Of a stretch of 64,000 bases of DNA, positions 3-63,998 are shown piece by piece. The notes beneath the pieces were generated by a model. That model worked only from the letters and a program-made list of their open reading frames with translations, had not been told where the DNA came from and did no database searches. Origin of the DNA: Amoebophrya sp. A120 (lineage: Eukaryota > Protista > Dinoflagellata); NCBI GenBank assembly GCA_905178155.1, contig CAJINV010000013.1, positions 1,802,281 to 1,866,280 on the forward strand, written 5' to 3'. The position numbers were made by a program, and so were the translations under genes. Numbering within the stretch: position 1 is the first letter of the stretch; each line of letters begins with the position of its first letter.

Positions 3-3000
3 ATGACCAGACTCGGGTCCTGCCTGTCCGTGCTGGATTGGGTGCACCTGGGCTCGTCCTTCAGCGTCCGCTCGTTCGCCCGAGTCGGGAGCAGCTTGTC
101 CGTATTCGGCTGCGTGTTGATGTCGAGCTCCTTGTCGCTGCTCGACTGCGCACACTTGGGCTCGACGTTCTCCGTCCGGAACTTCGCGCGGTTCGGGTCG
201 ACCTTGTCGACTTACGGTGTAGGCAGGCTCGGATCCAGCATGTCATTGCTGGATTTGCTGCATCTCGGATCTTCCGTTTCGGTGCGGGCTGCGTCCCGAT
301 TGGGCTCCAGCTGCAGCGTGTATGGCATCAGCCTGTTCGGCAGCAGCGTGAGCTTGCTGGACTTCATGTCCATGGGCTCCGCGCTGTCCCTGCGGTCGTT
401 CGCGAGGCTCGGATCCAGTCTGTCGGTGTTCGGCGTGACCAAGATGGGTTCGCTGCTGTCCTGCCTGGACTTCGTCACCTTCGGCAGTTCCTGCTCGATC
501 CGCATGTTCAGCCGACTGGGAAGTTCCGCTTCAGTTTACGGCCTTGCAAGACTGGGCTCGGCGTTGTCGCTGCTCGACACGGTCTCGATCGGCAGCTCCT
601 TGTCCGTCCGCACCTTCGCCCGGATGGGGTCCGCTGCCAGCGTGTACGGAATGGTCCGGTTCGGAAGTTCAATGTCTTTGCTGGACTGCTTCTGCATCGG
701 ATCCACCATGTCCATGCGCAGCTACGCGCGCCTGGGGTCTTCGCTTTCCGTGTACGGAATCAGTAGACTCGGGTCCTGCGTTTCCATTCTGGACTACGTG
801 AACATCGGGTCCGCTTTTTCGATCCGCGCGTTCAGCCGGTTCGGCTCCAGCTTCAGCCTGTTCGGCATTGGCAGACTCGGATCCTCCATGTCTGTGCTGG
901 ACATGCTGTCGCTCGGCAGTTCCATGTCCACCCGCGGTTTCGCGAGATTAGGGTCCAGCCTCTCCGTCTACGGACAAGTCAGGTGCGGATCGGCGTTGAG
1001 CGTCTTGGACATGACTTACTTGCGTTCGTCCTTGTCCTTGCGTTCTCTCGCGCGGTTCGGCTCCAGCTGCAGTCTCTTCGGCGTCTGCAGAATCGGGTCC
1101 TGCCTGTCCATGCTCGACCAGGTGACTTTTGGTTCCAGCTTGAGTCTCCGCAGCATCGGCCGCATGGGAAGCAGCGTTTCCGTGTACGGAATCTCGCGGT
1201 TCGGATCCAGTTGCAGCATTCTTGACGCGGTCAGCCTCGGCTCCGCGCTCAGCTGCCGGTCATTCGCGCGCTGCGGCTCGAGTTTGTCCGTCTTCGGGAT
1301 GGTCAGGTTCGGAAGTAGTTTGAGCGTGCTCGACACCATCAGCTTCAGCAGCGCGTTCAGCATGCGAGGGTTTGCACGACTGGGATCTTCTTTGTCCGTG
1401 TTCGGCTGCGCGAGAATCGGCTCTTCTCTCTCCGGCTTGGACTGTGTCTCCCTCGGCAGCTCGCTGTCGATCCGCAGCTTCTCGCGGTTGGGTAGCAGCT
1501 TCTCCGTGTACGGTGTGGCGAAGGTCGGGTCGTGCCTGTCGTTGCTTGACGGTGCGTCGATCGGCTCGAGCTTCTCCATCCGGTCGTTCGCAAGACTCGG
1601 AAGCAGCTTGTCGATCTTCGGATTGGTGAACATGGCGAGCTCGCTGTCTTTGCTGGATCTCGCTTCCCTCGGTAGCTCGATCTCCTGCCGCAGTATCGCG
1701 CGGTTCGGATCCGGCCTTTCGCTGTACGGCACGACCAGATTGGGGTCCGCGATCTCGCTGGTTGACTTCGCGAACCTGGGCAGCTCCTTCTCCTGCCGCT
1801 CGTTCGCGCGGTTCGGAAGCACGATTTCGGTGTACGGCACGGTCAGACTCGGGTCGGCTTTGTCCGTTCTCGACTACGTGCTGTGCGGTTCCAGTTTCAG
1901 CGTCCGGTCCTTCAGCCGCTTGGGATCCTCTCTTTCCGTCTTCGGCTGCGGCAGACTTGGAAGCTCCTTGTCCCTGCTCGACATGTTGACGCTCGGTTCC
2001 GGGGTCTCTCTCCGCAACTTCGCGCGCATGGGAAGTTCTTTGTCCGTGTTCGGGCTGTTCCAGTGCGGATCTAGCGTTTCGCTGCTGGACTTCCTGCAGG
2101 TCGGCTCGTCCCTCTCCGTTCGCGCGTTCCTGCGCATGGGCAGCACGCTGTCCGTGTACGGAATGAGCCGGCTGGGGTCACGGATGTCGATCCTGGATGG
2201 GTGCATGATCGGGTCCAGCTTCTCGATCCGAACCTTATCCCGACTCGGGTCCGCGATGTCTGTGTACGGAATCGGCCGGATTGGCTCCAGCCTCTCCGTG
2301 CTCGACTGCAGCATGATTGGCAGCAACGTTTCGACACGCAGCTTCGCGCGGTTCGGATCCAGTTTAAGTGTGTACGGATTGTCCCGGTTCGGATCCTCGA
2401 TGTCGATCTTGGACAACCTGAACCTCGGCTCCTCCGTCTCCATGCGGAATATGTGTCGACTGGGCTCGGCGTTCTCGGTGTACGGCAACGTACGCATGGG
2501 TTCCCTGCTCTCGATCCTGGACTACGGGCACATGGGATCGTCCGTTTCCGTGCGCGGTTTCTGCCGCCTCGGATCGTCGCTGTCGATCTTCGGCGTGGCG
2601 CGAATGGGAAGCAGCTTGTCGATTTTGGATCAGGTGAAGATCGGCAGCATGCTCTCCTGCAGAAGCTACAGCCGGTTCGGCAGCAGTCTGTCCTGCTACG
2701 GCATGATGCGACTCGGGTCCGGTGTCTCCATGCTGGACATGCTGCACCTCGGGTCCAGCTTCTCGATTCGGTCCCTCGGCCGCCTCGGCTCCAGCTTCAG
2801 TGTGTACGGTACGCTCCGCTTCGGGTCCGCGCTGTCCATGCTGGACTGCGTGAACCTCGGATCCAGCTTGTCCGTCCGCAGCCTGGCGCGGCTGGGGTCT
2901 AGTTTGTCGACGTTCGGAATTGCGCGATTGGGCTCGGCTCTGTCGGTGTTGGATTTCATCACCTTCGGTTCCACCCTCAGCTGCCGCTCGATGGGCCGAC

Positions 3001-6000: not shown

Positions 6001-9000
6001 TCTCCATTCGGAACTTCGCACGATTGGGTTCGAGTTTATCCGTGTTTGGCTGTTGCAGACTCGCATCCTGCTTGTCCATCCTCGACTGCGCGACGCTGGG
6101 GTCTGGCCTGTCCGTGCGGGCCTGGACGAGGTTCGGCTCCTCGATGAGTGTGTACGGCATGCTGCGGTTTAGCTCGCAGATGTCCGTGCTGGACATGCTC
6201 ACGATCGGCTCCTCCTTCTCCGTCCGCAACTTTGTCCGACTGGCGTCTGGGTTGTCCGTGATGGGGAGAACCCGACTCGGCTCGAACTTGTCGGTGTTGG
6301 ACCAGATCACGGTGGGATCGGCCTTGTCCGTGCGCGGCTTCGCCCGGTTCGGCAGCTCTTGCTCCCTGTACGGGTGCGCCAGACTCGGCAGCACGATCTC
6401 CATCTTGGACTTCGTCACGGTCGGGTCGTCGATGTCGCTGCGGCACTTCGCGAGACTGGGATCGTCCTTCTCCGTCTACGGCGTGGCACAACTCGGCAGC
6501 TGCCTGTCGTTGCTGGATAACATCCAGCTCGGCTCCTCGTGCAGCGTCCGCTCGTTTGCGCGGTTCGGGTCCACCTGCAGTGTGTACGGCGTGAGCAGAC
6601 TCGGCTCTCTGCTGTCCGTGCTCGACATTGCGCACATCGGCAGCTCCATCAGCGTCCGCGGCATGGCCCGGCTCGGCAGCTCGCTGTCCGTGTTCGGCCT
6701 GTGCCGGCTCGGATCCGCGTTGTCCATGCTGGACGGCTGTCAGCTCGGCTCCGCGCTGTCGGTCCGCAGCATGGCGCGGTACGGAAGCAGTTTGAGTGTC
6801 TACGGGTGTGTCAGACTCGGGAGCTCTATGTCCGTGTTGGATGTCACTGATTTGGGATCCACGTTGTCGCTGCGGTCCTTCGCACGACTGGGATCCAGCA
6901 CGTCGATCTTCGGCATGTGCCGCATGGGAAGCCGTTTGTCCATCCTGGACACGCTCATGCTCGGTTCGACCTACAGCCTCCGCGGCTTCTGCCGGATGGG
7001 CAGCAGTCTGTCGATCTTCGGCATGGCCAGATTGGGCTCCGCGCTCTCGATCCTCGATTTCGTCAGCATGGGCTCGTCGATCTCCGTGCGGTCGTTCGCG
7101 CGACTCGGATCCAGCTTGTCCGTCTGCGGCATCATGAAGATGGGATCCTCCTTGTCCGTCTTAGATGTGATTCAGCTTGGCTCCGCCATGTCCGTCCGCA
7201 GCTTCGCGCGCCTCGGGTCGAGTTTGAGTCTCTTCGGAATCAGCACGCTGGGCTCCGCGATGTCGGTGCTGGACTTCTTGACGCTCGGATCGTCCGCGTC
7301 GCTCCGCTCCTTCGTGCGCATGGGATCTTCCTTCAGCGTGTACGGAACGGTCCGGTTCGGTTCCGCACTGTCTTTATTGGACTTCACGCACTTTGGCTCT
7401 AGCACCTCGGTGCGCGGATTCTGCCGACTGGGGAGCTCCCTGTCCGTCTTCGGACTGGCGCGGATCGGATCCTCCTTGTCGATCCTGGACAACTGCCAGA
7501 TCGGGTCCAACATCTCGATTCGCGGGTTCTCCCGGCTGGGAAGCAGCTACAGCGTCTACGGCATGACAACTTTGGGGTCCAGTTTATCTGTCCTCGACTG
7601 CGTGCATCTAGGATCTGCTCTCTCAGTCCGCCACTACGCCCGTTTAGGTTCGTGCCTGTCCGTGATGAGCCGCAACTTGCTCGGATCCAGCTTCTCCGTG
7701 CTCGACACGCTGCAGATGGGATCCAGCTTCTCGGTCCGCTCGTTCGCGCGCCTGGGAAGTTCCCTCTCCGTGTTCGGCGTGACGCGCCTGGGCTCGACGT
7801 TGTCCGTGCTCGACCGCATGTCCATCGGCACCAGCCTGTCGATCCGCGGGTTCGTTAGGCTCGGCAGCGCTATGTCGATCATCGCCGCGGCGCGGTTCAG
7901 CAGTTGCATGAGTGTCAAGGACTACGTCCATCTCGGTTCGAGTTTGTCGGTGCGCTCCTTCACGCGGCTCGGCTCCGCCTTCAGTCTGTACGGGCTGTCG
8001 AAGGTCGGATCCAACATGTCGCTGCTGGACTTCATGCACATCGGTAGCGCGATCTCGGTCCGGTCTCACGCGCGGTTTGGAAGCGCACAGTCGATCTACG
8101 GCTTCGCCCGACTCGGCTCCACGATCTCCGTTCTGGACTTCGTGTCCGTCGGATCTGCGGTGTCGCTGCGCTCCTTCGCGCGACTCGGATCTGCGCTTAG
8201 CGTCTACGGAACTTCCAGGTTGGGCTCAACCTTGTCGGTTCTGGACTTCGTCGCGATCGGTTCCAGCTTCAGCCTGCGCGGCTTCAGCCGCATGGGATCC
8301 TCTTTCAGCATCTTCAGCCGCGCGGCCGCCGGTTCGGTGTCCGTCCTGGACTTCTTCGAGCTGGGCAGCACGATGAGCATCCGGTCGACGACTTGCTGCG
8401 GCAGCATGCTGTCTCTGTTCAGCCAGGTGCGGTTCGGATCGACGTTGTCCGTTTGCCAGGCCATGTTCATGGGATCCGCCTTGTCCTGCCGTGGCGCGAG
8501 CAGACTTGGTTCCAACTTCAGCATCTTCAGCTACACAAACCTCGGCAGCAACCTGTCCGTGCTGAACTTTGCGATCGCGGGATCGACCTTGTCCCTCCGT
8601 GCGTTCGGGCGGTGCGGGAGTAATTTTTCCGTGATCAACCAGGTCACGTTCGGGTCCAGCTTGTCTGTCCTGGACTACGCCTGCCTCGGCAGCTGCGTGT
8701 CCATGCGGTCGATGGCTCGGTTGGGCAGCAGCTTCTCGATTTACGGCATGTTTCGCGCGGCGAGCAACTTCTCGGTGTTGCAGTTCGTGCAACTCGGATC
8801 GGCGTTGTCGATTCGGTCCTACAGCCGGCTCGGATCGACGCTCTCCGTCGCGGGCTACGTGAAGTTTGGCTCGACGGTTTCTTCCCAGGAGCAGACGAAC
8901 CTGACGTTGCTGTCCGTCCGCAGCTGGGTCCGCCTCGGCTCCGGCATGTCGATCTACGACTGCGTGCGATACGGTTCCAGCCTGTCGATCCTGAACTACA

Positions 9001-12000
9001 TGACGTGCGGGTCTAGTTTGTCGCTGCGCTGCTACGCTCGCGTTGGCTCGTCCGTCTCCATCTACGGCAAGTTCCGCATGGGCTCCATGATGAGCACGTT
9101 CGACACGATTTTGGCCGGCTCGTCCCTCTCCCTGCGCGGCTTCCAGCGGTACGGATCCGCTGTGAGCATCTTCAGCCAGGTGCGGATGGGAAGCAGCATG
9201 TCGATTTTGAACCACTTGGAACTCGGATCCAGTCTGTCCCTCCGCGCCCGCGCGCGGCTCGGCTCCGGCTGCAGCCTGTTCGGAAAGGTCCGGATGCGCG
9301 ACACCATGTCGATCCTGGACTTCTTCGCGGCGGGATCTTCGCTCTCGATCCGCGCGTCGACCCGAGTGGGATCGAGTCTGTCCCTGTTCAGCCAGGTCCG
9401 GCTCGGCTCCACCATGTCGCTGCTGGACCGGGTGCACATGGGATCCAGCTTGTCCATCCGCGGCGTGACGCGACTGGGCAGCGGATTCAGTATCTTCTCC
9501 GCGCAAAGACTCGCCTCGAGTATGTCGGTGTTGGACTCCGCGTACTTGGGCTCCACGTTATCCTTGCGTGGTATTTCGCGGTTCGGCTCGAATTTCTCGA
9601 TCTACAACCGCGTCGCTCTGGGCTCGAGCTTCTCTGCTCTGTCCCAAAGTCATCTAGGTAGTTCGTTGTCGATCCGCAGCTATGCCCGGTTCGGCTCGGC
9701 AATGTCTATCTTCGGACTCGCATCTGGTGGCAGTTGCTTGTCCGTGCTGGACTCGGCGAGTTTGGGGTCCGCGATCTCCCTGCGGTCCTTCTCGCGCATG
9801 GGTTCCAGCTTCTCCGTGTACGGCATGCAGCGGTTGGGCAGCAGTTTGTCTTGCCTGGACACGATCCTGCTCGGCAGCGCCTTGTCCGTCCGCGGCGCCA
9901 TCCGGCTGGGAAGCTCCATGTCGATCTTCAGTCAGATGAGGTTCGGATCCGGGCTCTCCTGCTTGGACTTCACGAACTTCGGCTCGGTTCTGTCCCTTCG
10001 CGCGACATTGCGCATGGGATCGGCGATGAGCATCTACGGAAAGATCCAGGCCGGGTCCAGTTTGTCCATTTTGGACACCACCTTGCTCGGGTCCAGCTGC
10101 AGTCTCCGGGCTTACGCTCGACTCGGGTCCGTCCTGTCGATCTACAACAGGGCTAAAGTCTCCGGCGCGTTCTCGGTGCTGAACTTCACGAACTTCGGGT
10201 CGACGCTGTCCCTGCGTTCCTACAGTTCGCTGGGCAGCAGTCTCTCCGTGTTCTGTAACATTCAGGGTGGCGCGGCGCTCTCCCTGCTCGCGAACGGGTC
10301 CTTCGGTTCGTCCGCCTCCCTGCGTGCGTTCGCGCGACTGGGCAGCAACGTGTCCGTCTTGGACTCCATCATGTTCGGAAGCAGCGTGTCCATGCGGAAC
10401 TTCTTCCGCGTCGGGTCCGCGATGAGCATCTTCAGCAAGCTGGGTTGCGGCTCGAATTTCAGCATCCTGGACAGCACGCACTTGGGTTCGAACCTGTCTC
10501 TCCGCGGCTACGCACGACTCGGATCTTCCTTCTCGGCGTTCACCTGCACGAGATTCGGCTCCAGCTGCTCGATCCTGGATTGCCTGGGCTTGGGATCCAC
10601 GTTCTCCATGCGCTGCACCGGGCGACTCGGTTCCTCGGCCTCCGTGTTCTCCGCTGTGAGACTTGGCTCGACGCTGTCCTGCTTGGACCAGACCATGATC
10701 GGATCCGGATTGTCGATTCGTGCGTTCCTGCGCCTCGGCTCCGCCTACTCCGTGTTCTCGCGAGTCCGCGGTGGCAGCAGTCTGTCTTTGCTGGACTGCG
10801 CGTTCTTCGGTAGTTCGCTCTCCATGCGCGCGCAGAACCGGCTCGGGTCCACGTTCTCCGTGTTCGGACAGGTCCGCGCGGGCTCTTGTTTGTCCATTCT
10901 GGATTACATGAGCCTCGCTTCGACGTTATCTCTCCGCGCGGCCGTCCGCGTTGGCTCCGGCGTGTCCATCTTCGGCTGCTCCAACATGGGATCGCGGTTC
11001 TCCGTGCTGGACTCCGTCGCGTTCGGAAGCAGCATGTCGCTGCGTTCGCACATGCGCGTCGGGTCTGGGCTGTCCGTGTTCGGCGCGATCCGAACGGCTT
11101 CCAGCCTGTCCGCGCTCGGCTACGGCATCTTCGGGTCGTCGTTGTCCATCCGCAACTACATGCGGGTCGGATCCGCCATGAGCTTGTTCAGCCAGGCCAG
11201 GATGGGCAGCTCCCTCTCCGTGCTGGACAAGATCGCGTTCGGGTCGAGTTTGTCGCTCCGACAGCTCGCAAGGTTCGGAAGTTCCCTTTCCGTGGTTGAA
11301 ACCGCACGGTTCGGATCGTCTCTGTCCGTCCTCGACTACTTCAGCATCGGGTCTTCGTTCTCGATGCGTGCGGCCGGCCGGTTCGGCTCCACTATGTCGG
11401 TGTTCGGCGTGGCGCGCGCCGGGGAGGCGGCTTCGCTACTGGACTTCTTCGCGATCGGGTCGACGCTCTCCTTGCGTTCGTACTGCCGCGTGGGTAGCGG
11501 GTTGTCGATCACCGGGTCGACGGACATGGGTGACAAGTTGTCCGTGCTCGACGCGATCAGCTTCGGGTCCTCCATGTCGCTGCGGTCCACCTTCCGGTGC
11601 GGCAGCAGCGCGAGCTTGCTGGACTTCGTCACGCTCGGGTCCGCGTTGTCCCTGCGTGGCGCGATCCGGTGCGGTAGCAGTCTGTCCATCCACAAAGGGA
11701 TTCGTATGGGTGCGTACATGAGTGTGATGGACGAAGCCTGCCTGGCTTCCGCCGTGTCCCTTCGTGGCTTCGCGCGGTTCGGCAGCAGCATCTCGATCTT
11801 CGACATGTTCGCGGCCGGCAGCTCCCTGTCGCTCCGCACGTACGGCCGGGTCGGCTCCGCGGTGTCCGCGTTCGGCTGCGTGCGGTGCGGCAGCACGATG
11901 AGTGTGTTGGACGCCACGGCATTCGGGTCCAGTCTCTCTTGTCGTACCTACGTGCGGCTCGGGTCCTCCATGAGCGTGATGTGCGGCGCCAGACTCGGAT

Positions 12001-51000: not shown

Positions 51001-54000
51001 CGGGAAGCAGACTGTCGGTCCTGGATATGCTCGCCATCGGCTCCTCGGTGTCCATCCGGTCGTCGATGAATGTCGGAACGCACTTGTCCACACTGTCCTT
51101 CGCGATGTGCGGCAGCAGTCTGTCCATCCGGTCCCAGGTGCGCGCCGGATCCTCGCTCTCGATGCTGGACTTCACCGTCTGCTCGAGCTCTGTCAGCGTC
51201 CGCAGCTTCCTGCGGATCGGCTCCACCTGTTCCGTGGCTGGCCTCACCGCGGTTGGGTCGTTGAAGAAGCTGTCCGTGATTGACTTCACCAACCTCTCGA
51301 GCACGCTGTCTCTCCGCAGCCTCGCCCGGGTGGGTAGCAAGTTCTCCGTGCTCGACTACGTGAACCTGGGCTCCGCACTGTCCATCCGCACGTCCACCCG
51401 ACTCGGTTCCGGTCTCTCCGTCCTCGGCAACGCCAAGATCGGCGAGGTGATGAGTGTGCTCGGCTTCGCGAAGATCGGATCATGCTTGTCGCTCCGGTCG
51501 TTCTGCAAACTCGGCTCCAAGGCCTCCGTCTGCGACATGCTCGCGCTCGGCTCCTCGCTGTCGATCCGTGCGATCGCGCGCGTGGGAAGCGGACTCTCGG
51601 TTGCCGGCAACGGCGTCCGCCTGTCCGCGTCGATGAGCGTGTTGAACTTCGTCACCCTGGGCTCGAGCCTGTCGGTCCGGTCCACGGTGAAGATCTCCGG
51701 GTCCGCCAGTATCATCAACTTCGTGTCGCTCGGATCCAGCCTGTCGCTCCGCAGCGTCGCAAGACTCGGCTCCAACCTCTCCACGCTGCAGTACACCGAC
51801 CTGGGCTCCGCTCTGTCGATTCGGTCGTTTGCGCGGTTCGGCTCCGGCCTGAGCTGCTACGGCAGGACGGCGTTCGGCAGCTGCATGAAGCTGTCCGTGA
51901 TCCAGTTCATGACCGCCGCGAGCAGTTTGTCGCTACGCTCCTTCGCCCGGCTGTCCAGCCGCGCGTCGGTGCTGGACTTCCTCGCGATCGGGTCCTCGTT
52001 GTCCATCCGCACGACCAGCAGAATCGGTTCGGCGCTTTCCATCGCGGGTACCGTGGACGCGCAGTCCTCGCTCTCGGTGATGGACTTCGTCCACCTCGGC
52101 TCCGCGCTGTCCGTCCGCCGCAGCGCCAAAATTGGTGCGCGTATGAGTGTGTGCGATTACCTCGGCCTCGGCTCCGCGGTGTCCTTCCGCTCGTTCGCGC
52201 GCCTCGGCAGCAACCTGTCGGTCCAGGGTGCGTCCGAGTTCGGCGACCGCTTGTCCGTCGCCAGCCTGGTCGCGCTGGGCAGCAGCATGTCGTTGCGCAG
52301 CCACTGCAGAATCGGCGACGCGGTCTCCGCGCTGGATGCCATCATGCTCGGCTCCGCGTTGTCGCTCCGCAGTTCCGCACGGGTGTCCGGCCATTTGTCC
52401 ATGCTGTCCTTCACCACGCTCGGGTCCGCGCTGTCCGTCCGGGGCACCACCAGATTCGGCTCCAGAGCGTCCGTTTTGGATCTCCTCAACCTTGGTAGCT
52501 CGCTGTCGCTCCGTGGCTACGCGCGCGTCGGCTCCGGCTTGTCCGTGATCGGTCTCTCGTCCGTCGGCTCCTGCCAGCAGCTGTCCGTGATCGGCGCCGC
52601 TAGTGTCGGCAGCAGCCTGAGTCTCCGGTGCTTCATGCAGCTGAGCGGAACGGCTTCCGTCTTGGACTTCGTCAACATGGGCTCCACTCTCTCCGTCCGA
52701 TCCGTCGGCCGACTCGGCAGCAAGTTCTCCGTTGTGGACTTCCTGAACTGCGGCTCCGCACTTTCTGTCCGATCCAATGCGAAGATCGGGTCGAACATGT
52801 CCGTGCTGAACTTCGTGCAGCTCGGCTCCGCGCTCTCGGTCCGTAGCTTCATCCGCTGCGGCAGCAGCGCGTCCGTGGCCGGCTCCATCCGGCTGTCCAG
52901 CTGCTACCGCCTGTCCGTCGTGCAGCAGGTCACGCTTGGCAGCTCCTTGTCGCTGCGCAGCGTGGCGCGCATGGGAAGCAACGTGTCGGTGTTGTCGTTC
53001 GTGCAGATTGCCAGCTCGCTGTCGGTGCGCACGTACACGAGGATGGGAAGCGGTTTGTCCATGATGGGCTCGCAGAAAGCAGGCGGCTACCTCTCCGTGC
53101 TGTCCCACGTGCAGCTCGGGTCGACACTCTCGCTGCGGTCCACGACCAGAATGGGCAGCAACGTCAGCATCCTGTTCTACTCGCAGTGCGGCAGTTCCCT
53201 GTCCGTCCGGACGATTGTCCGCATCGGGTCCGGCGCCTCCGTGGTCGGCAACCTGCGGGCCGGCAAGAACTGCAGCGTGATCCAGTTCGCGAACCTCGGA
53301 TCCACGTTGTCGGTGCGTGGTTTGGGTCGGTGCGGCAGCCGCGCGTCGGTGCTCGACTTCCTGCACCTCGGCAGCTCCGTCTCGCTCCGCAACGCGATCA
53401 AGCTCGGCTCCCAGGCGAGCGTCATGGCTCTCGGCCGGTTCGGCGAGATGTGCTCCGTGCTCGACGCGGTCAGCTGCGGCAGCAGCTTCTCGCTGCGCGG
53501 GATTGCAAGACTGGGCGACAAGCTGTCGTTACTCGACTTCAGCGTCCTCAGTTCCTCCCTCTCCCTGCGCCAGTACTGCAGGATCGGGTCCGGCACGTCC
53601 GTGTGCGGCACCTTGAACGTCAGCAAGAAGCTGTCTATCATCGACCAAGTCACGCTCGGTTCCGCCCTGTCGGTCCGCGGCGCGGCAAGGTTCGGGTCCC
53701 GAATGTCCATCCTGGACTTGTGCAACCTGGGTTCCAGCCTGTCCGTCCGACAGTCGCAGAACCTCGGTTCCCGCCTGTCCGTCTTCGACATGATGCAGCT
53801 GGGCTCGTCGCTCTCGCTGCGCTCCCTCGGCCGGTTCGGCAGCCACGTGTCGGTGTTCCAGTTCGCGCACCTGGGCAGCTCCATGTCCATCCGCAGTTAC
53901 GTCCGCATCGGCAGCGGCATCTCGACGCACGGCCTGACCGCCTGCAGGTCGGTGTACCGCATGAGCGTGATCAACCAGGCGGCCCTTGGTTCTTCCCTCT

Positions 54001-57000
54001 CCGTCCGGTCGCACACCAGACTCGGTAGCTACGTCTCCGTGATCAACTTCTGCACCGCGGGCTCCGCGCTGTCCGTCCGCTCCTACGCGCGTATGGGCAG
54101 CAGCATGTCGGTCCAAGGGCACGTCAAGGCGCAGTCGCAGTGCAGCATCCTGATGCAGGTGAGCCTCGGTTCCGCGCTCAGCTTGCGGTCCACCGCCCGG
54201 TGCGGTTCCAAGTGCTCCGTGCTCGCGTACGCGCAGTGCGGTTCCGCGTTGTCCGTGCGCGCCATGGCGAGGATGGGCAGCGGATTCAGTGCCGTGGGTG
54301 GCGTCCGGTTCAGCGAGAAGCTTTCCGTGCTGGAGTGCACCGTTCTCGGCAGCAGCTTCAGCTTGCGGTCCGTCGCCAGAATGGGCAGCTTCATGTCGGT
54401 TTTATCACATTCCCACATCGGATCCACGTTGAGCTTGCGCTCCTTCGCGCGGTGCGGTTCCGCGTGCTCCGTGCTCGAGTTCGTCAACATGGGCTCTTCG
54501 GTCTCGCTGCGGACCAAGACGCTGATCGGCGCGAAGTTGTCGGTTCTGGATTACGTCCACCTCGGTTCGACGGTGTCCGTCCGCAATTTCCTGCGCATTG
54601 GATCCTCCTTGTCCGTGAAGGGGGTTGCGGCCTTTGGCTCGGTGTCCAACCTGTCCGTGATCAGCTTCGCGACGGTTTCGAGCAGCTTGTCGCTCCGCGG
54701 CGTCGCCAAACTGGGGAAATTCCTGTCGGTTTTGGACAGCGTGTGCTTCGGCAGCTCGCTCTCCATCCGCGCGACCGCCAGAATGGGAACACAGCTTTCC
54801 GTGCTGGACTTGTCCACGCTCGGGTCCACGATTTCGGTCCGCAGCCTCTGCCGCATGGGAAGCAGAGCCAGCGTGCTCGACTTGCTGAACCTCGGTTCCG
54901 CACTGTCAATCCGGGGGTTGGTCAGACTCGGCTCGACCTTGACCGTCACGGGTCTCACCTACTGCGGCAGCTGCCTGCGCACCTCGGTTATCGACTGCAC
55001 CAACCTCGGAAGCAGCCTGTCCGTCCGGTCGTTTGGTAACATGGGCAGCCGCGTGTCCGTGCTGGACTTCTGCCAGCTCGGCTCGTCGATGAGCATCCGC
55101 TCCATGGTCCGAAGCGGTTCTCGCGTCTCGATCCTGGACATGCTGAACCTCGGTTCCACGTGCTCGCTGCGACAACAGTCGCGCCTCGGCGGCAGCCTGT
55201 CCACGCTGAACTACGTCAACATGGGTAGCAGTCTGTCCGTGCGCAGCTTCTGCAGAATCGGATCGACGCTGTCGGTCACCGGCTCCTCGCAGCTCGGATC
55301 CTGTCTGAAACTGTCCGTCGTGCAGTGCGCGTCGATGGGCAGCTCGATCTCCGTGCGGAACTTTTCCAGACTCGGTGGCAAGTTCTCCGTGATGAACTTC
55401 GTGTCGTGCGGCAGCACGCTGTCCGTGCGGGCCGTCGCACGCGTCGGCAGCGGCATGTCCATTGCCAGCAGCGCCAAGATGGGTGCGCAGATGAGCGTGC
55501 TAGGCTTCGTGAGTTGCGCATCTTCACTGTCCATCCGCGCCACGTCGAGAATCGGTTCCCGGGCCTCGATCTTCGACATGCTCGCCCTCGGCAGTTCCAT
55601 CTCCATCCGCGCGAAGGCCAGGATGGGCTCCGGCTGCTCGGTGGTTGGTGTCGCCAGACTGTCCGGTCGTCTGTCCGTCGCGAACTGCGCGTCGCTCGGC
55701 TCCAGCTTCTCGCTCCGTTCCGTCGGTAGGTTTGGAAGCAAGATCTCCATGCTGAACTTCTGCAGTGTCGGCTCCAGCTTCTCGCTGCGCCGCACCGCCA
55801 ACCTGGGCAGCAACATGAGTCTGTTGGACATGGCGAACTACGGTTCCAGTCTGTCTGTCCGCCAGTTCGTCCGCGTTGGCAGCACCTTGTCGGTTCGCGG
55901 CACCACCTCGCTCGGTTCCGTGGCCAAGGTCAGCGTGATCGGCTTCTCGCATCTCGGCTCCACACTGTCGCTCCGCTGCGTCAGCAAGTTCGGCAAGGAG
56001 ATGAGCATTTTGGATAGCGTCGCGCTCGGCTCCAGTCTGTCGCTCCGCTCCTACCTCCGGTGCGGATCTTCGGTGTCCATCTACACGTCTGCCTTGGGCG
56101 GCGGCAAGATGTCCGTCCTCGAACAGGTGCACCTGGGCTCGGTGCTGTCCGTCCGCGGAAGCACCCGGTTCGGATCCCGGTTGTCCATCTTCGACATGCT
56201 GAGCTGCGGCTCGCAACTCAGCGTCCGCGGGTTGACGAAACTGGGCAGTTCCGTCAGCGTGTCCGGCCTGGGCAAGTTCAACCAGATCACCGGAAAGGTT
56301 TCCGTCCTCGCCTGGATGGCGTGCAGCAGTAGCTTCTCGCTGCGCTCCTTCGCGAGACTGTCCTCGAATTTGTCGGTGCTGGACAACGTCGCGCTCGGCA
56401 GCAGCATGTCGTTGCGACACGTGTTCCGCCTCGGCTCCAACGCGTCGGTTCTCAACTACACGACCCTCGGCAGCGCGCTGTCCGTGCGTAGCAGTTCGAG
56501 ACTCGGCTCCCGCATGTCCGTGTTGGACACGTTGAACCTCGCTTCCTCCATGTCGCTCCGTGCGGTCGTCAGGGTCGGCAGCGGAATCAGCATGGTCGGC
56601 CTTTGCGCCGCGGGATCGGTGTTGAAGTGCTCCGTGCTCAACACCGTCAGCCTCGGTTCCACCCTGTCTGTGCGGGCGTTCGCTCGGCTCTCGAGCAAAG
56701 CTTCGGTCCTGGACATGATGGCGCTCGGCAGCAGTGTGAGTTTGCGCAGCACGTGCAGGACGGGCGACAGACTGAGTGTGCTGAGCTACACCCAGATGGG
56801 CTCCGCATTGTCCATCCGCGCGGCGGTGCGGTTCGGCAGCAAGTTCTCCGTCCTCGACTGCCTCACGCTCGGCAGCTCGGTGTCGTTGCGGTCCTTCGTC
56901 CGTGTCGGCTCCGGTTTGTCCGCCCACGGCTTCACGGCGGTGGGCTCGTGCTTGAAGCTCTCCGTGATCAACTGCACGAACCTGGGCAGCAACTTGTCGG

Positions 57001-60000
57001 TCCGCATGCTCGCGAAGGTCGGATCCCGGGCTTCGGTCCTGGACTTCCTGCATTTGGCAACGTCCGTGTCGGTGCGCCACCTCTGCAGAATCGGTAGCTC
57101 CCTCTCGGTCGGTGGCCCGCAGGCAATCTTGCAGGCCCGGTTGAGCGTGCTGAACCAGGTCCACTGCGGTTCCGCACTGTCCGTGCGCTCGCACTTCCGC
57201 TCCGGCAGCATGTGCTCGATCATGAACTTCGTGAACCTCGGCTCCAGCTTGTCTGTGCGCACGTACGTTCGCATTGGCAGCGGCTGCAGCGCGGTCTCGC
57301 ACGCAATGGTGCAGGGCAAGATCTCCGTGTTGAACTACGCGAATTTGAGCTCCGCGCTGTCCGTGCGATCGGCGGTGCGCATCGGCTCCCGGGCTTCGGT
57401 GCTGAACTTCTTGAACCTCGGCTCCAGCTTGTCGGTCCGCTCGTTCACGCGCTGCGGCTCTGACCTGTCTATCGCCGGCCAGTTCCGCTTCAGCGGTGGC
57501 TTGTCGGTCGCGGATGTGCTGACCATCGGCAGTTCCATGTCCGTCCGGTCCTTCAGTCGCATTGGCGGCAAGATGTCCGTGCTGAACTTCCTGCACCTCG
57601 GATCCACCTTGTCGGTCCGGACCATCGCCCGAGTCGGCAGTGCGGTGAGTGTCACGGGCGCGGGCAGGGTCGGCAACACCATGTCGATCGTGTCCCATGT
57701 GGAGATGGGTTCCGCCTTGTCCATTCGCGGCCTGATCCGCTGCGGCAGCAAGATGTCGGTCCTGGACTTCCTGTCGCTCGGCAGCACCTTGTCGCTCCGC
57801 GGCATGGTCAACTCGGGCAGCAAGATGTCGCTCGTCAACTTCGCGACCCTCGGCAGCGCGATCAGCGTCCGCACGCACGCGCGCTTCGGCTCGCGCGCCT
57901 CGGTGCTGGATTGCCTGGCGCTCGGGTCCGCCGTGTCCATGCGGTCCTTCGTCCGTGCGGGCAGCGCCCTCTCCGTGCGCGGATTGGTCGCGGCGGGATC
58001 CGTGTACAGGCTGTCCGTCATCGGCTGCACGCTTGCGGGCTCGGCCTTGTCCGTCCGCAGCACCAGCAGACTCGGCTCTCGCGCCTCCGTGCTGGACTGC
58101 CTCCACCTCGGTAGTTCGTTCAGCGTCCGCGCGATGTCCAGAATCGGCAGCGGCCTCAGCGTCGCGGGAACAGCCACTCTCGGCTCGCAGCTTTCCGTGC
58201 TCAGCTTCTCGACGGTCGGCTCCAGTTTGAGCGTCCGCAGCTCCTCTCGCTACGGCTCGCGGTGCAGCGTGCTCGACATGCTCAACCTCGGCTCCGTCGT
58301 CAGTGTCCGTGCCTTCACCAGAATCGGCTCCGGCGTCAGCGTGCAGGGCGCAGCCAAGTTCAACACGAACTTGAGCGTTCTGTCTTGCGCGCACCTCGGC
58401 TCCAGCTTCAGTCTCCGCAGCTTCGCCAGATTCGGCGACAAGACCTCCGTGCTGAGCTACGTGGCGTGCGGCAGCGCGTTGTCTGTGCGCAACACCTTCC
58501 GGTGCGGCACGACCTGCTCGGTTCTCAGCTTCGGCCACCTCGGTAGCGCCATCTCCGTCCGCGGAGTTGTCCGAAGTGGCTCGAAGGCCTCCGTCTTCGA
58601 CTGCCTCAGCCTCGGATCGTCGTTGAGCATCCGCTCGGCGAGCCGAATCGGATCCTCTTGCAGCGTTCGTGGTTTGGTGAACGTGGGTTCCGTGCAGAAC
58701 TTGTCGGTGGTCAACTTCATGCACGTCGGCAGCTCGCTGTCCGTCCGCAGCATGTCCAGGTTCGGTGGCTGCTTGTCCATTCTGGAGTTCACGCAGTGCG
58801 GCAGCGCGCTCTCGCTGCGTGGGGTCGCCAGAATTGGATCCAGCGTTTCCGCGGTCGGCGCGGGTAAGATCGGAGGAAAATTATCCGTGTTGCAGCAAGC
58901 CATGCTGGGCAGCGCTTTGTCCATCCGCGGGTTCGCTCGCGCGGGCAGCAGGGCGTCCGTACTCGACATGATGAATCTGGCCTCGACGATGAGCTTGCGT
59001 GCGGTTTGCCGCGCCGGCTCCTCGCTTTCCGTCGTCGGCAGGACACTCGGTATGGGCAACATGTCCGTGCTGAACGCCATGCACGTCGGGTCGTCCTTCA
59101 GTCTTCGGTCTATGGGACGCGTCGGCGGTGCCATGTCCGTGCTGGACTTCGTCGAACTCGGCTCATCGCTATCCGTCCGCGCCTTTGCTCGCTTCGGCTC
59201 CAGCTTCAGTGTGGCCGGGGATAGGGCCGTTCTGCAGACGAAGTTATCCGTGCTGAACTTTGCGACGCTCGGCTCCTCAGCCTCCGTGCGCGCGATCAGC
59301 CGGTGCGGATCCAGAATCTCCGTCCTGGACTACATGAACCTCGGTTCCTCGGTCTCGCTGCGTCAGTTCGCGCGGTTCGGTTCCGCTGTCTCCTGCGTGA
59401 AGGCCGCAAGGCTGGCTGGAAGCGCGTCGGTGCTGTCCTTCACGCAACTCGGCAGCAGCTTGTCGGTCCGCGGCATGGTCAGACTTGGCTCGAGACAGTC
59501 CGTCCTGGATTGCTTGACCCTCGGTAGCAGCGTGTCGGTGCGTGCCTTCACGAGACTCGGATCGACGTGCAGCGTCCGTGGTTTGGCGATGTGCGGCTCC
59601 ATCAGCAGCCTCTCCGTGATCAACTTCGCCCACCTCAGCAGCAGCTTCAGCTTGCGGTCGCAGGCCCGGTTCGGCGATTGCATGAGCGTGATGGACTTCG
59701 TCCTGATCGGCTCCAACATGAGCGTCCGCGCCTACACGAGAATGGGCAGCAGTGTGTCCGTCTACCACAACATGATGGCCGGCGAGAAGCTCTCCGTGCT
59801 CAACAGCGTCAACCTCGGCTCGACGTTGTCCGTGCGCGGCATGGGCCGCCTGGGCAGCCGCGCCTCCGTGCTCGACTGCTTGGCGCTGGGATCGGCGTTG
59901 TCGCTGCGTGGTGTCGCGCGCTTCGGAAGCTCCGTCTCCGTTTCCGCCGGCAAGGCGTTCGCCCCGAAGCTGTCCGTCTTGAACCAGGTGTGCCTGGGCA

Positions 60001-63000
60001 GCAGCTTCTCGCTGCGCGGCCGGGCCCAGCTCGGCTCGCGTATGAGCATTCTGAACTGCGTTAGCCTCGGCTCGGCGCTCTCCATCCGCCAGTACAGCCG
60101 CCTCGGCAGCGGACTGTCGGTCAAGGGTTCGGGCAACATGAGTGGCAAGCTCTCCGCTCTGCAGTGCGCAAACCTCGGGTCTGCGCTGTCCGTCCGCGCT
60201 GCGACCAGACTCGGTAGTCGCGCGTCCGTGCTCGACATGCTGATGCTTGGGTCCACGCTCTCCGTCCGCGGCGTGACCAGACTCGGGTCCGCGGTCTCCG
60301 CCGCCGGCAGCGGTCGCGTCGGCCAGAGCTTCTCCACCTTGCAGTGGTCGGCCGTCGGCTCCGCGATTTCCGTCCGCGGTACCAGCCGACTGGGAAGTAG
60401 ACTGTCGGTCTTCGACGTGTTTAACCTGGGCTCCACACTCTCCGTCCGCGCCTTCATCCGGTGCGGCAGCACGGTGAGTGTGGCGGGCCGCACAGCCATT
60501 GGCTCGTGCCTGCAGCTTTCCGTGGTCAACGCGATCCACATCGGGTCCACACTGTCGCTCCGCGCGAACATGAAGTTCGGCAGCGCCATGTCGGTTCTCG
60601 GCGTCACCAACGCCAGCAACAAGCTCAGCGTGCTGAACTGCGGCAACCTCGGCAGCGCGCTCTCCATCCGGGGAGTAAGCCGCTGCGGTTCGCGCGTTTC
60701 CGTGTTCGACTGCCTGCGACTCGGCAGCACCGTCAGCATTCGGTCCTTCACCCGGTGTGGTTCCTGCCTCTCTGTGCACGGTGCGGTGGCGATCTCCAGT
60801 CTGAACAAAGCGTCCATCGTGCAGTGGGCGCACCTCGGCTCGTCGCTCTCCGTCCGCGGGGTCGCGCGCCTCGGCAGCCGAGCAAGTGTGCTGGATTGCC
60901 TGAACCTCGGCTCATCGCTGTCCGTCCGCACCATGGCCCGCCTGGGCTCGAACGTGAGTTGCGTCAGCAATACGAAGGTCGGCGGGAAACTGTCTGTGCT
61001 GAACTTCTCGCACCTGGCCAGCTCCTGCTCGGTCCGCGCCATGGCGAGACTCGGGTCCCGCGCGTCCGTGCTGGACATGCTGAACCTCGGTTCCACCGTG
61101 TCCCTCCGGTCCTTCATCCGACTGGGTAGCAGTCTGTCGCTGGCCGGCGACACCGAGTTCGGCAGCCGTGTCAGTTTGTTCGAGCAGATCCACCTCGGGT
61201 CGTCTCTGTCCATCCGCGCGTCTATCCGGTGCGGCAGCCGGGCGTCCGTGCTTGACTGCTTCCAGATCGGCAGTGCCATCAGTGTCCGCTCCACGTCCAG
61301 AATCGGCAGCAGGGCCTCCGTGTTGAACTTCTTCCAGCTCGGGTCCGCTCTGTCCGTCCGGGCGATGATTAGGACCGGCAGTGGTATTTCCGTCCACAAC
61401 ACGCCCGTCGCCGGTCACAAACTCTCCCTGCTCAACGAAGTGCAGCTCGGGTCCACGCTCTCCGTCCGGTCCTTCATCCGCGCGGGCAGCAGCATCTCCG
61501 TGTTGGACGCCATCATGTGCTCGTCGAGCATCAGTCTCCGCGCGTCCGGCCGGTTCGGCAGCTACGCCTCGATCATGACGTTCTGCCAGGTCGGCAGCTC
61601 GCTGTCCGTCCGCAGCTTCTGTCAGATCGGTAGCTCGATGTCGGCGATTGGCTCCGGCCGCGTCGGCGGCAACTGCTCAATCTTGTCCTTCGTCAGGCTT
61701 GGCAGCTCGCTGTCCACCCGGTCCACCGCCAGGTTTGGCAGCAGGATGTCCGTCATGGATTGCTTGGCGCTGGGCAGCAGCGTGTCCCTGCGCGGGTTCA
61801 GCCGCGTCGGCCTTGGCTGCAGCGTGAAGGGCCTGCTCGCCTGCGGGTCCGCGCACGCCACCAGCGTGATCGGCTTCTTCAACCTCGCAAGTTCCCTGTC
61901 CGTCCGCGGTGTCACGAGGACCGGATCCAGGTGCAGCGTGCTGGACTTCTTGACGCTCGGCAGCTCCGTTTCCATCCGCAACTTCGCCCGCATCGGCTCG
62001 GGCGTCAGCGTCGGCGGCAAGGGCACCTTCCAGGGATCCTTTTCCTGCATCAGCCACGCGCAACTCGGCTCGGCGTTGTCCATCCGCGCGACCGCGCGGG
62101 TCGGCAGCCGGATGTCCGTGCTTGACATGCTCGGTCTGGGGTCCACCGTGTCCACGCGAACCATGGCTCGCTTCGGCTCCGGCCTGTCGGTCGTTAACGC
62201 CGCGAAGATTGGCGGCAAATTGAGCGTTCTGAACTTCACCGGTTGCGGTTCCGCGTTGTCCGTCCGAGGGTATGCGAAGTTCGGCAGCAAGGCATCCGTT
62301 GTGGACTTCGTGGCGCTCGGTAGCAGCATCTCGGTTCGCAGCTTCATGCGGGCGGGATCCAGCGTTTCCGCGTTCGGATCCACGCACGTCGCGCAAGGCA
62401 GAATGAGCGTGCAGAAGTTGTGCAACATCGGATCTGCACTTTCCGTCCGCGGTGCCATGCGGTTGGGCAGCCGTGCGTCCGTTTTGGATACGCTCGCGCT
62501 CGGCTCGTCCATCTCGGTCCGAGCCTTCAGTCGGTGCGGCAGCAGCGTGTCTGCCGTCGGCCTCGTCCGGGTCGGCAGCCTGCACATGGCGTCGGTGATT
62601 GGCGTCACGCACCTCGGGTCCAGCCTGTCCGTCCGCGGGGTCACCAGGTTCGGCTCCAAGATATCCGTGTTCGACTTCCTGCAGCTCGGCTCGTCCGTCT
62701 CGGTCCGACAGTTCGCGCGGTTCGCCAGCAGCGTGTCTGTCGCCGGACCCAGAGTGCGCGCCGCGGGCATGGCGTCCGTGCTCGACTTCTCGGTGCTGTC
62801 GAGTAGCATTTCCGTCCGGTCGTTCGGTCGACTGGGCGGGAAAGTCTCCGTCCTGGACATGGTTAGCCTCGGCTCCTCGCTCTCGGTGCGCACTTACTGC
62901 AGGATTGGGTCCAGCTGCAGCGTCATGTCCCACGTCCCGGGTGTGGGTGGAAGACTGTCTGTGCTCGAGCAGGCGACGCTGGGCTCCATGCTGTCCGTCC

Positions 63001-63998: not shown

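Follow-up and report, generated by a model that had tools for sequence, protein, structure and literature searches.

Background

The K1F endosialidase, the L-shaped tail fibre pb1 of phage T5, gp12 of GA-1 and phi29, and other tail fibres and tailspikes of phages and giant viruses carry, after a long beta-helical fibrous region, a C-terminal Peptidase_S74 domain (S74, "chaperone of endosialidase") with a Ser-Lys pair. Every characterised S74 protein is a trimer: the domain trimerises, helps the beta-helix that precedes it to fold, and is then released by self-cleavage (PMC8326128). Among eukaryotic proteins, the membrane-bound transcription factors MYRF and MrfA likewise join an S74 domain, with the Ser-Lys spacing also found here, to a beta-helical stalk and one membrane segment; in MYRF the stalk has few turns, and a cytosolic DNA-binding domain is released (PMC8326128). 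Here we describe a gene of the parasitic, small-genome dinoflagellate Amoebophrya sp. A120 which combines such a domain with about 2,310 units of a twelve-residue repeat. Most of it is contained in a stretch of 64 kb, C13:1802281-1866280 (contig CAJINV010000013.1), in the 115.5-Mb assembly of 401 contigs; this whole stretch is referred to as "the window". The 100 kb on either side were also read for gene borders, and gene parts outside the window are given in extrapolated window coordinates.

The gene is real, transcribed and spliced, its repeat is kept by selection at the protein level, and its domain architecture is conserved in four paralogues. The product, of about 28,900 residues, is probably assembled by the S74 chaperone into a homotrimeric cross-beta fibre, about 0.4-1.1 µm long; trimerisation, self-cleavage, coil geometry, topology and cellular role are what we infer.

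Differences from the described systems are considerable. With respect to tail fibres, the gene is cellular, intron-containing, eukaryotic and present in four copies, a putative N-terminal hydrophobic anchor or signal replaces the virion-attachment domain, and a large receptor-binding or enzymatic tip is absent. In contrast to MYRF, a DNA-binding domain is missing, the stalk measures about 27,700 aa, and S74 and the membrane segment are at opposite ends. Related database proteins with the same combination of 12-residue repeat and S74 have 300-4,200 aa; the giant protein is 7-100 times longer. Short repeats with inward aliphatic residues are also found in pentapeptide-repeat, hexapeptide left-handed beta-helix and bactofilin solenoids, but here the period is 12, not 5 or 6, and no tile reaches a convincing family score; known solenoids have 5-30 coils, the giant protein about 1,000. 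Titin (~34,000 aa) and PKZILLA-1 (~45,000 aa) fall in the same size class; they are built of 90-100-aa domains or enzyme modules, while in the giant protein one 12-aa motif recurs ~2,310 times with almost no insertions or deletions (indels).

The Amoebophrya genome paper describes the A25 (116 Mb) and A120 (115.5 Mb) genomes, from the Penze estuary (PMC7789003). The longest exon listed there for A25 measures 79,744 bp (PMC7789003, Table 1), and the 79,750-nt exon reported here differs from it by 6 nt. In that paper the exon is a length statistic only, and proteins of a giant, fibre or endosialidase-like kind are not mentioned; the literature searched contained no account of the giant protein.

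Results

Extent and expression of the gene

On the plus strand, frame 3 of the window (from base 3) contains 0 stops in 21,332 codons, as opposed to 127-631 stops in each of the other five frames; taking the lowest of these rates, the chance of a stop-free frame is about e^-127. Around the window the stop-free frame reaches 26,593 codons and is delimited by canonical GT..AG borders, yielding a single exon of 79,750 nt which includes the entire window. Repeat-bearing exons go on at both sides of it. The parts of the protein follow in the order: Ser/Arg-rich N-terminal tail, hydrophobic segment, head, ~2,310 units, short non-repeat tip, Peptidase_S74 domain (Table 1). Exons were searched singly, and their phases across the observed joints were checked by arithmetic. 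Summed exon lengths give ~86.6 kb of coding sequence and ~28,900 aa, or ~3.0 MDa per chain. The window codes for ~74% of the whole protein and is not the full extent of the rod; the original prediction, made from the window, gave a minimum length.

The product of the giant exon alone has a mass of 2.77 MDa and an isoelectric point (pI) of ~11, with 2,398 Lys and Arg residues versus 792 Asp and Glu. Its net charge amounts to about +1,600 per chain, an unusual value for a secreted fibre. Such a strong positive charge points to a partner of negative charge, or to attachment to anionic surfaces of the host.

Transcription is documented by several sources. RNA runs of the same organism contain 72% of the words sampled from the 3' region of the gene, as expected for a spliced transcript. 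A 39,575-nt RNA-type contig matches L019:3001-9000, in the sequence 3' of the window, and lacks all of the predicted introns; upstream it reaches another 34 kb into the repeats, and downstream ~1.2 kb past the exon of the chaperone domain. Repeat exons are joined to domain exons both by this contig and by raw reads, and the exon phases fit: 166 and 210 raw RNA reads, from another study, cover the last two exon joints. The raw-read library is 3'-biased, and many of its cDNAs start at L019:6771 with an identical unaligned leading sequence, presumably the library adapter. Contigs from an estuary metatranscriptome have identical exon joints, with a few differences, mainly C>T; because of these joints, the gene is taken to be expressed in nature as well. 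The C>T changes of the estuary contigs occur in short clusters (L019:3891-3898, 6695, 7513-7546), which could represent a natural strain variant, or else damage or editing.

C-terminal domain and related proteins

The last coding region (L019:7807-8397) matches Pfam PF13884 (Peptidase_S74, "chaperone of endosialidase") with 37.4 bits (cut-off 22, E 3.1e-9), and a genome-wide search with the same profile finds the domain again, at C13:1874126. The domain is opened, in exon L019:7477-7653, by the sequence TSSDKRRKRDIAPL, which aligns to NVSDKRLKLNVHPL of the related protein P0002; both domain exons are collinear with the C-terminus of this protein. In the motif S-D-K-R-R-K, Ser and Lys are five residues apart; a spacing of five also separates the catalytic Ser and Lys of endoNF (S911/K916) and MyRF (S587/K592) (PMC8326128). 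The domain core is followed by a putative helical, heptad-like tail of ~110 aa; in MyRF, trimerisation is driven by a C-terminal triple coiled coil (PMC8326128).

Related proteins were fetched from databases, 154 in all, comprising the 150 best hits and cluster members. The motif SD.R.K is present in 49 of the 154 and a GFIAQE-type motif in 33, which makes the combination of repeat and chaperone domain a recurrent architecture. The 12-residue repeat co-occurs with S74 also in unrelated-looking, AT-rich proteins of 2,800-4,200 aa (P0014, P0058, P0066). Two relatives, P0001 and P0013, match Pfam Bactofilin. In the ESM Atlas a repeat tile falls nearest to unnamed viral clusters, with low recognition, which is to be regarded as a lead only. 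Four of the strong hits (P0004, P0006, P0008, P0012) feature Pro- and Leu-rich variants of the motif, such as LGSxxSLxSFAR; these could either form a subfamily that has diverged or stem from GC-rich contigs with genes called in the wrong frame.

Four paralogues and their N-terminus

By DNA similarity, three further giant arrays were located, on C3 (~1.25-1.29 Mb, minus strand), C2 (~12.90-12.97 Mb, plus strand) and C11 (~3.09-3.14 Mb, minus strand). PF13884 matches number exactly four in the whole genome; each of them closely follows, on the 3' side and in the same orientation, one of the giant arrays. All four paralogues have kept the S74 domain and its intact Ser-Lys pair. Paralogue open frames reach 18,586, 11,458, 7,502 and 4,334 aa. 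The three additional copies were judged from their 5' ends (L030-L032) and from search hits.

All four 5' ends code for a hydrophobic segment of ~20 residues, in which letters differ while the character is kept; it is directly followed by small residues (QADA, QTEA, AQA and TTDG). Since it is kept as protein in four diverged copies, the segment is considered real, rather than a translated pyrimidine tract. A head of the form FVL(V/I)S..G.I(S/T)LLGP(I/V)DIDP...(F)R..G...W is also conserved in all four. Upstream of the hydrophobic segment, each paralogue features a Ser/Arg/Thr-rich open frame of 300-560 aa, here located at L017:3590-4567 (C13:1785870-1786847), and a similar M(L)ETEP start is found in two of the four. 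The order within exon 1 is a Ser/Arg-rich tail of ~330 aa, the hydrophobic segment, the head FVLVS..LLGP.DIDP, and the first units. This arrangement points to a cytosolic tail (~330 aa) and a signal-anchor function of the hydrophobic segment, which might alternatively be a cleaved signal peptide.

Table 1. Location of the described features, in window coordinates (negative values and values above 64,000 lie outside the window)
Feature	Position	Strand	Other coordinates	Description
Exon 1	-16410..-14237		L017:3590-5763	candidate start MLETEP; first ~25 units
Hydrophobic segment	-15432..-15367			FFGKFLFAFFLFFQLFFLQADA; in exon 1
Giant exon	-14008..65741		C13:1788272-1868021	79,750 nt; GT..AG borders
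Window part of giant exon	3..63998	+		21,332 codons, ~1,778 twelve-residue units; start, stop and splice sites of the gene all lie outside
Zone I in window	3..8312	+		strict (A-B-C)n super-repeat of 36 aa, from class string and run table
Query tile of second AlphaFold2 run	435..974	+		180 aa, 15 units
Later zones	8313..63998	+		12-aa unit kept; super-patterns ABABx, xBABx
Ten short repeat exons and beginning of non-repeat tip	65902..71320		L019:1902-7320	
Exon with end of tip and beginning of chaperone domain	71477..71653		L019:7477-7653	
Ser/Lys pair	71559..71576			S-D-K-R-R-K; first part of the domain, in exon 71477..71653
Last exon	71812..72397		L019:7812-8397	Peptidase_S74 core, putative ~110-aa helical tail, stop codon

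The twelve-residue repeat

The product of the window is rich in Ser (22%), Leu (13%), Gly (11%), Val (9%) and Arg (8%), and contains only 11 Pro and 7 Trp. Its residue identity is 0.31 at a lag of 12 and 0.35 at lags of 24 and 36, against about 0.06 at 11 and 13. Units were delimited, by a profile and dynamic-programming segmentation, over all 26,593 codons of the open frame, and 99.0% of these fall in 2,194 units with a length of exactly 12 aa. The spacing between units is exactly 12 in 2,098 of 2,193 cases, the remainder being mostly insertions of 1-2 residues, and the longest run without indels includes 369 units, or 4,428 aa.

The consensus unit is L1-G2-S3-x4-L5-S6-V7-x8-x9-F10-A11-R12. 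Three positions are nearly invariant: G2 (91%), S3 (87%) and S6 (97%). Hydrophobic residues prevail at position 1 (L 44%, F 16%, I 10%, M 9%, V 9%), position 5 (L 46%, M 15%, V 10%) and position 7 (V 49%, L 23%, I 17%), while position 11 is mostly A (24%), V (22%) or T (11%), and position 12 R (46%), N (8%) or H (7%). The position rules originally read from the window (hydrophobic 1, 5 and 7, Gly at 2, Ser at 6, A/V/T at 11, R/H/N at 12, and rare Pro) all hold by these counts, and the estimate of about 1,770 units agrees with the 1,778 obtained by dividing 21,332 codons by 12.

Units belong to classes, as follows in the strict zone (zone I in Table 1): A is LGSxLSxLDxxx, B is LGSSxSxRxFAR and C is LGSSLSVYGxxR. 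The strict A-B-C zone takes up the first ~7,400 aa of the exon, reaching window base ~8312; its portion within the window is the 3' part of the 369-unit indel-free run, which begins upstream. In the first 2,000 aa of the window, lag-36 identity is 0.57. In the later zones lag 24 exceeds lag 36, and occasional insertions of 1-2 residues are found after G2-S3. An inserted non-repeat domain was not found in these zones (8313..63998), where the largest gap between units is 16 aa. Co-occurrence of Cys residues between units, sought as an indication of a disulfide ladder, gave no signal: Cys just replaces hydrophobic residues.

Conservation of the repeat is a property of the protein, rather than of the DNA. 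Tandem Repeats Finder reports merely four tiny arrays in the window. Neighbouring 36-aa super-repeats are 56% identical at both the DNA and the protein level, and 62% of the residues conserved between them use different codons; third-position identity is 0.43, versus 0.37 expected from composition. Both codon families of serine, TCN and AGY, are in use, in proportions of 82% and 18% for the invariant Ser6, and of 69% and 31% for Ser3. Because synonymous sites are near saturation, and because TCN and AGY codons are both used for the invariant Ser, the pattern is kept by protein-level selection. Recent DNA amplification and untranslated or decaying sequence, considered as possible origins of the pattern, are ruled out by the Tandem Repeats Finder result, the codon divergence and the mixed Ser codons.

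Fold prediction

Two AlphaFold2 runs were performed: the first on a 360-aa query, with an alignment of 71 non-overlapping internal tiles, the second on a 180-aa query, with an alignment of 82 indel-free tiles. The predicted local distance difference test (pLDDT) and predicted template modelling (pTM) scores were 42 and 0.42 for the model of the first run, 61.5 and 0.56 for the best model of the second. Both runs predict strands only, of ~10 residues each, with two-residue turns at G2-S3 and a period of 12; neither a confident helix nor disorder, the outcomes named beforehand as contrary to a beta-type repeat, appeared on the tiles.

The second-run model was also submitted to an exhaustive VIA-align search, for structural overlay. 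The top match is a pentapeptide-repeat protein, 6fls_A (Z 12.2, root mean square deviation, rmsd, 2.5 Å, over 153 of 180 residues), followed by EfsQnr (Z 11.2) and then by pectate lyases, IgA1 protease and phage tailspikes (Z 8-10). Since the 180 residues of the model span the height of ~156 residues at 20 per coil, a coil in the model would contain ~24 residues, or two units. Sequence does not assign the repeat to the pentapeptide class, characterised by A(D/N)LXX repeats in a quadrilateral right-handed helix of 20 residues per coil: there is no 5-residue periodicity and no match to Pfam. For Bactofilin (PF04519), no tile of the giant protein matches above the cut-off.

The original prediction had also pointed out a resemblance to hexapeptide beta-helix repeats, for which the sequence matches are marginal. 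Unit positions 1/5 and 7/11 fit the i, i+4 pattern of the hexapeptide [LIV]-[GAED]-X2-[STAV]-X. For Pfam Hexapep (PF00132), one 1,200-aa tile sums to 30.3 bits (cut-off 27), with no single stretch passing; when 180-aa tiles are searched, just 4 of 82 reach E<0.01. A sequence search of the PDB, by tile and by profile, gave marginal LpxD/LpxA matches (E 0.007-0.07) and one gp12 match. Left-handed hexapeptide helices, with triangular coils of 18 residues, overlay the model badly (rmsd 12-13 Å).

Covariation within the repeat provides a further indication. Class-conditioned side-chain volumes compensate at i,i+2 (pairs 11-1', 5-7 and 10-12; z -4 to -7) and at i,i+6 (10-4', 5-11 and 7-1'; z -3.6 to -5.3). 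The former is expected of beta-strands, the latter agrees with a narrow coil in which the faces concerned oppose or adjoin each other; neither fixes the size of the coil. Raw volume correlations between units were discarded, as they are dominated by the A/B/C class pattern; covariance among super-repeats, too weak with 189 rows, was discarded as well. On the whole, a cross-beta, solenoid-type structure is the best-supported fold: moderate support from the models suggests, rather than establishes, it.

Assembly and length of the fibre

The presence of S74 makes doubtful the single-chain rod that had originally been proposed, since this domain is known to trimerise beta-helical fibres. Trimerisation is likely to be part of repeat folding, as indicated by the intact Ser-Lys pair in four paralogues, by SD.R.K in 49 of the 154 relatives, and by the co-occurrence of repeat and S74 in unrelated-looking proteins. 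According to the assembly that we favour, the chain would enter the secretory pathway, with its N-terminus either membrane-held or cleaved. Once the C-terminus has emerged, three chaperone domains would trimerise, the repeat would then fold beta-helically from the C-terminus to the N-terminus, and the Ser-Lys pair would cut the chaperone off. The expected product is a kinetically stable, strongly basic homotrimeric cross-beta fibre, few nm thick and ~0.4-1.1 µm long. The three chains may lie side by side, or form an intertwined triple beta-helix as in T4 gp5C and the endosialidase stalk, wound around one axis with each chain contributing one face per turn; the intertwined variant is suggested by the presence of S74 only.

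Length depends on the coil. Stacked strands are 4.8 Å apart; with 24 aa per coil, the window (21,332 aa) would measure 0.43 µm and all repeats (~27,700 aa) 0.55 µm. The corresponding values are 0.57 and 0.74 µm for 18 aa per coil, and 0.85 and 1.1 µm for either 12 aa per coil or the intertwined triple helix, where each chain contributes one 12-aa face. The 0.55-0.85 µm originally estimated are thus of the right order of magnitude; they refer, however, to ~74% of the protein, and the AlphaFold2 model favours the low end.

Some observations weigh against a trimeric, chaperone-assembled fibre, or at least against its details. The spliced RNA contig measures 39,575 nt, and no single contig covers all 87 kb; the 5' exon, the start codon and the membrane topology are putative, being assigned from DNA. 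In the second AlphaFold2 run, the other four of the five models were collapsed (pLDDT 24-30), and a Foldseek search of both models versus the PDB and BFVD retrieved nothing significant. For the beta-solenoid that had been anticipated, the beta-type repeat and the overlay with right-handed solenoids (Z 12.2) speak in favour, while low pLDDT values and the Foldseek result do not. All models are monomers, and it is homology of the C-terminal domain that points to a trimer; a confident-looking single-chain solenoid, if correct, needs no folding chaperone. The cellular location is likewise conjectural.

Alternative explanations

Each chain might fold by itself, as a single-chain beta-solenoid rod, with S74 being vestigial, or serving only to cap or process the end. 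The better AlphaFold2 model, a self-contained right-handed solenoid, and the hexapeptide-like sequence matches are in line with this possibility, which is nevertheless judged unlikely: that model is of low confidence, characterised S74 proteins are all trimers (PMC8326128), and the domain is kept, with an intact Ser-Lys pair, in four paralogues and about one third of the fetched relatives. It is very unlikely that the protein is a mucin-like coat component, Ser-rich, largely unstructured and heavily O-glycosylated. A Ser content of 22% and low AlphaFold confidence would be compatible with such a coat; Pro, though, is almost absent, positions 1, 5, 7 and 11 follow a strict hydrophobic pattern, with Gly and Ser invariant at set positions, 369 units run without an indel, and both predictions contain strands only. 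Least probable of all, and hardly to be believed, is a runaway repeat expansion or decaying gene, transcribed without giving a functional full-length protein. While the product is known here from DNA and RNA alone, decay is at variance with 0 stops in 26,593 codons in spite of saturated synonymous sites, with the use of both codon families for the invariant Ser, with an architecture kept in four paralogues, and with splicing and expression both in culture and in nature.

A further alternative is about the role in the cell and does not conflict with the trimeric-fibre mechanism: chains could pack into the paracrystalline shaft of a trichocyst, the giant protein being its matrix or length ruler. 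Sporonts of Amoebophrya make trichocysts, to which a function in host attachment is attributed (PMC9478091). The indel-free phase, the extreme length and a pI of ~11 would suit a packed, dischargeable structure, and the four paralogues differ in length. As localisation and stage-specific expression are assumed in this proposal, rather than observed, we regard it as improbable in this specific form.

Possible role

Taking again the homotrimeric fibre as the preferred reading, its most likely role would be in host attachment of the free-swimming dinospore, as a fibre of the cell surface or of an extrusome; such a role is reasonable because of the function attributed to sporont-stage trichocysts (PMC9478091). 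A broader scenario may also be proposed, tentatively and with some doubt: the parasite could have taken from a phage or giant virus a tail-fibre module, with a 12-residue beta-helical repeat and a self-cleaving trimerisation chaperone; by an enlargement of about a hundred-fold, it would have obtained four trimeric fibres, strongly basic, membrane-anchored and half a micron to one micron long, which form the host-attachment apparatus or set its length, as the thread of the trichocyst or as fibres on the dinospore surface. In that case, indels would be nearly absent because a molecular ruler is under selection.

The giant protein would rank among the largest predicted in any organism, with ~28,900 aa mostly coded by one exon of 79.75 kb, and would far exceed in length every other fibre of the family with an intramolecular chaperone. 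It would offer a test case for several questions: how a cross-beta rod of ~1,000 coils folds, whether 27,000 residues can be zipped up by a chaperone at the C-terminus, and whether organelle size is set by the number of repeats. For the Syndiniales, major killers of dinoflagellates that form blooms, it would also be a concrete candidate for the host-attachment machinery.

Additional observations

About 100 other open reading frames (ORFs), of 150-1,066 aa, are found in the window, such as 55524-58724 on the minus strand. They are regarded as shadows of the repeat, not as genes, because of its skewed codon composition, which leaves only 127 stops in frame -2. Two ORFs, of 458 aa and 245 aa, lie 5' of the gene, at about C13:1764000-1783000.

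Finally, a 21-nt sequence, which we take to be the dinoflagellate spliced leader, has 63 exact copies in the genome, versus 0 for the reversed control. Copies are scattered over many contigs (C13:1967905 and C13:2350871 are examples), and some are in tandem, as at C3:6453575 and 6453604, or at C14:388183 and 388205. They are either spliced-leader genes or relics of retroposed mRNAs.

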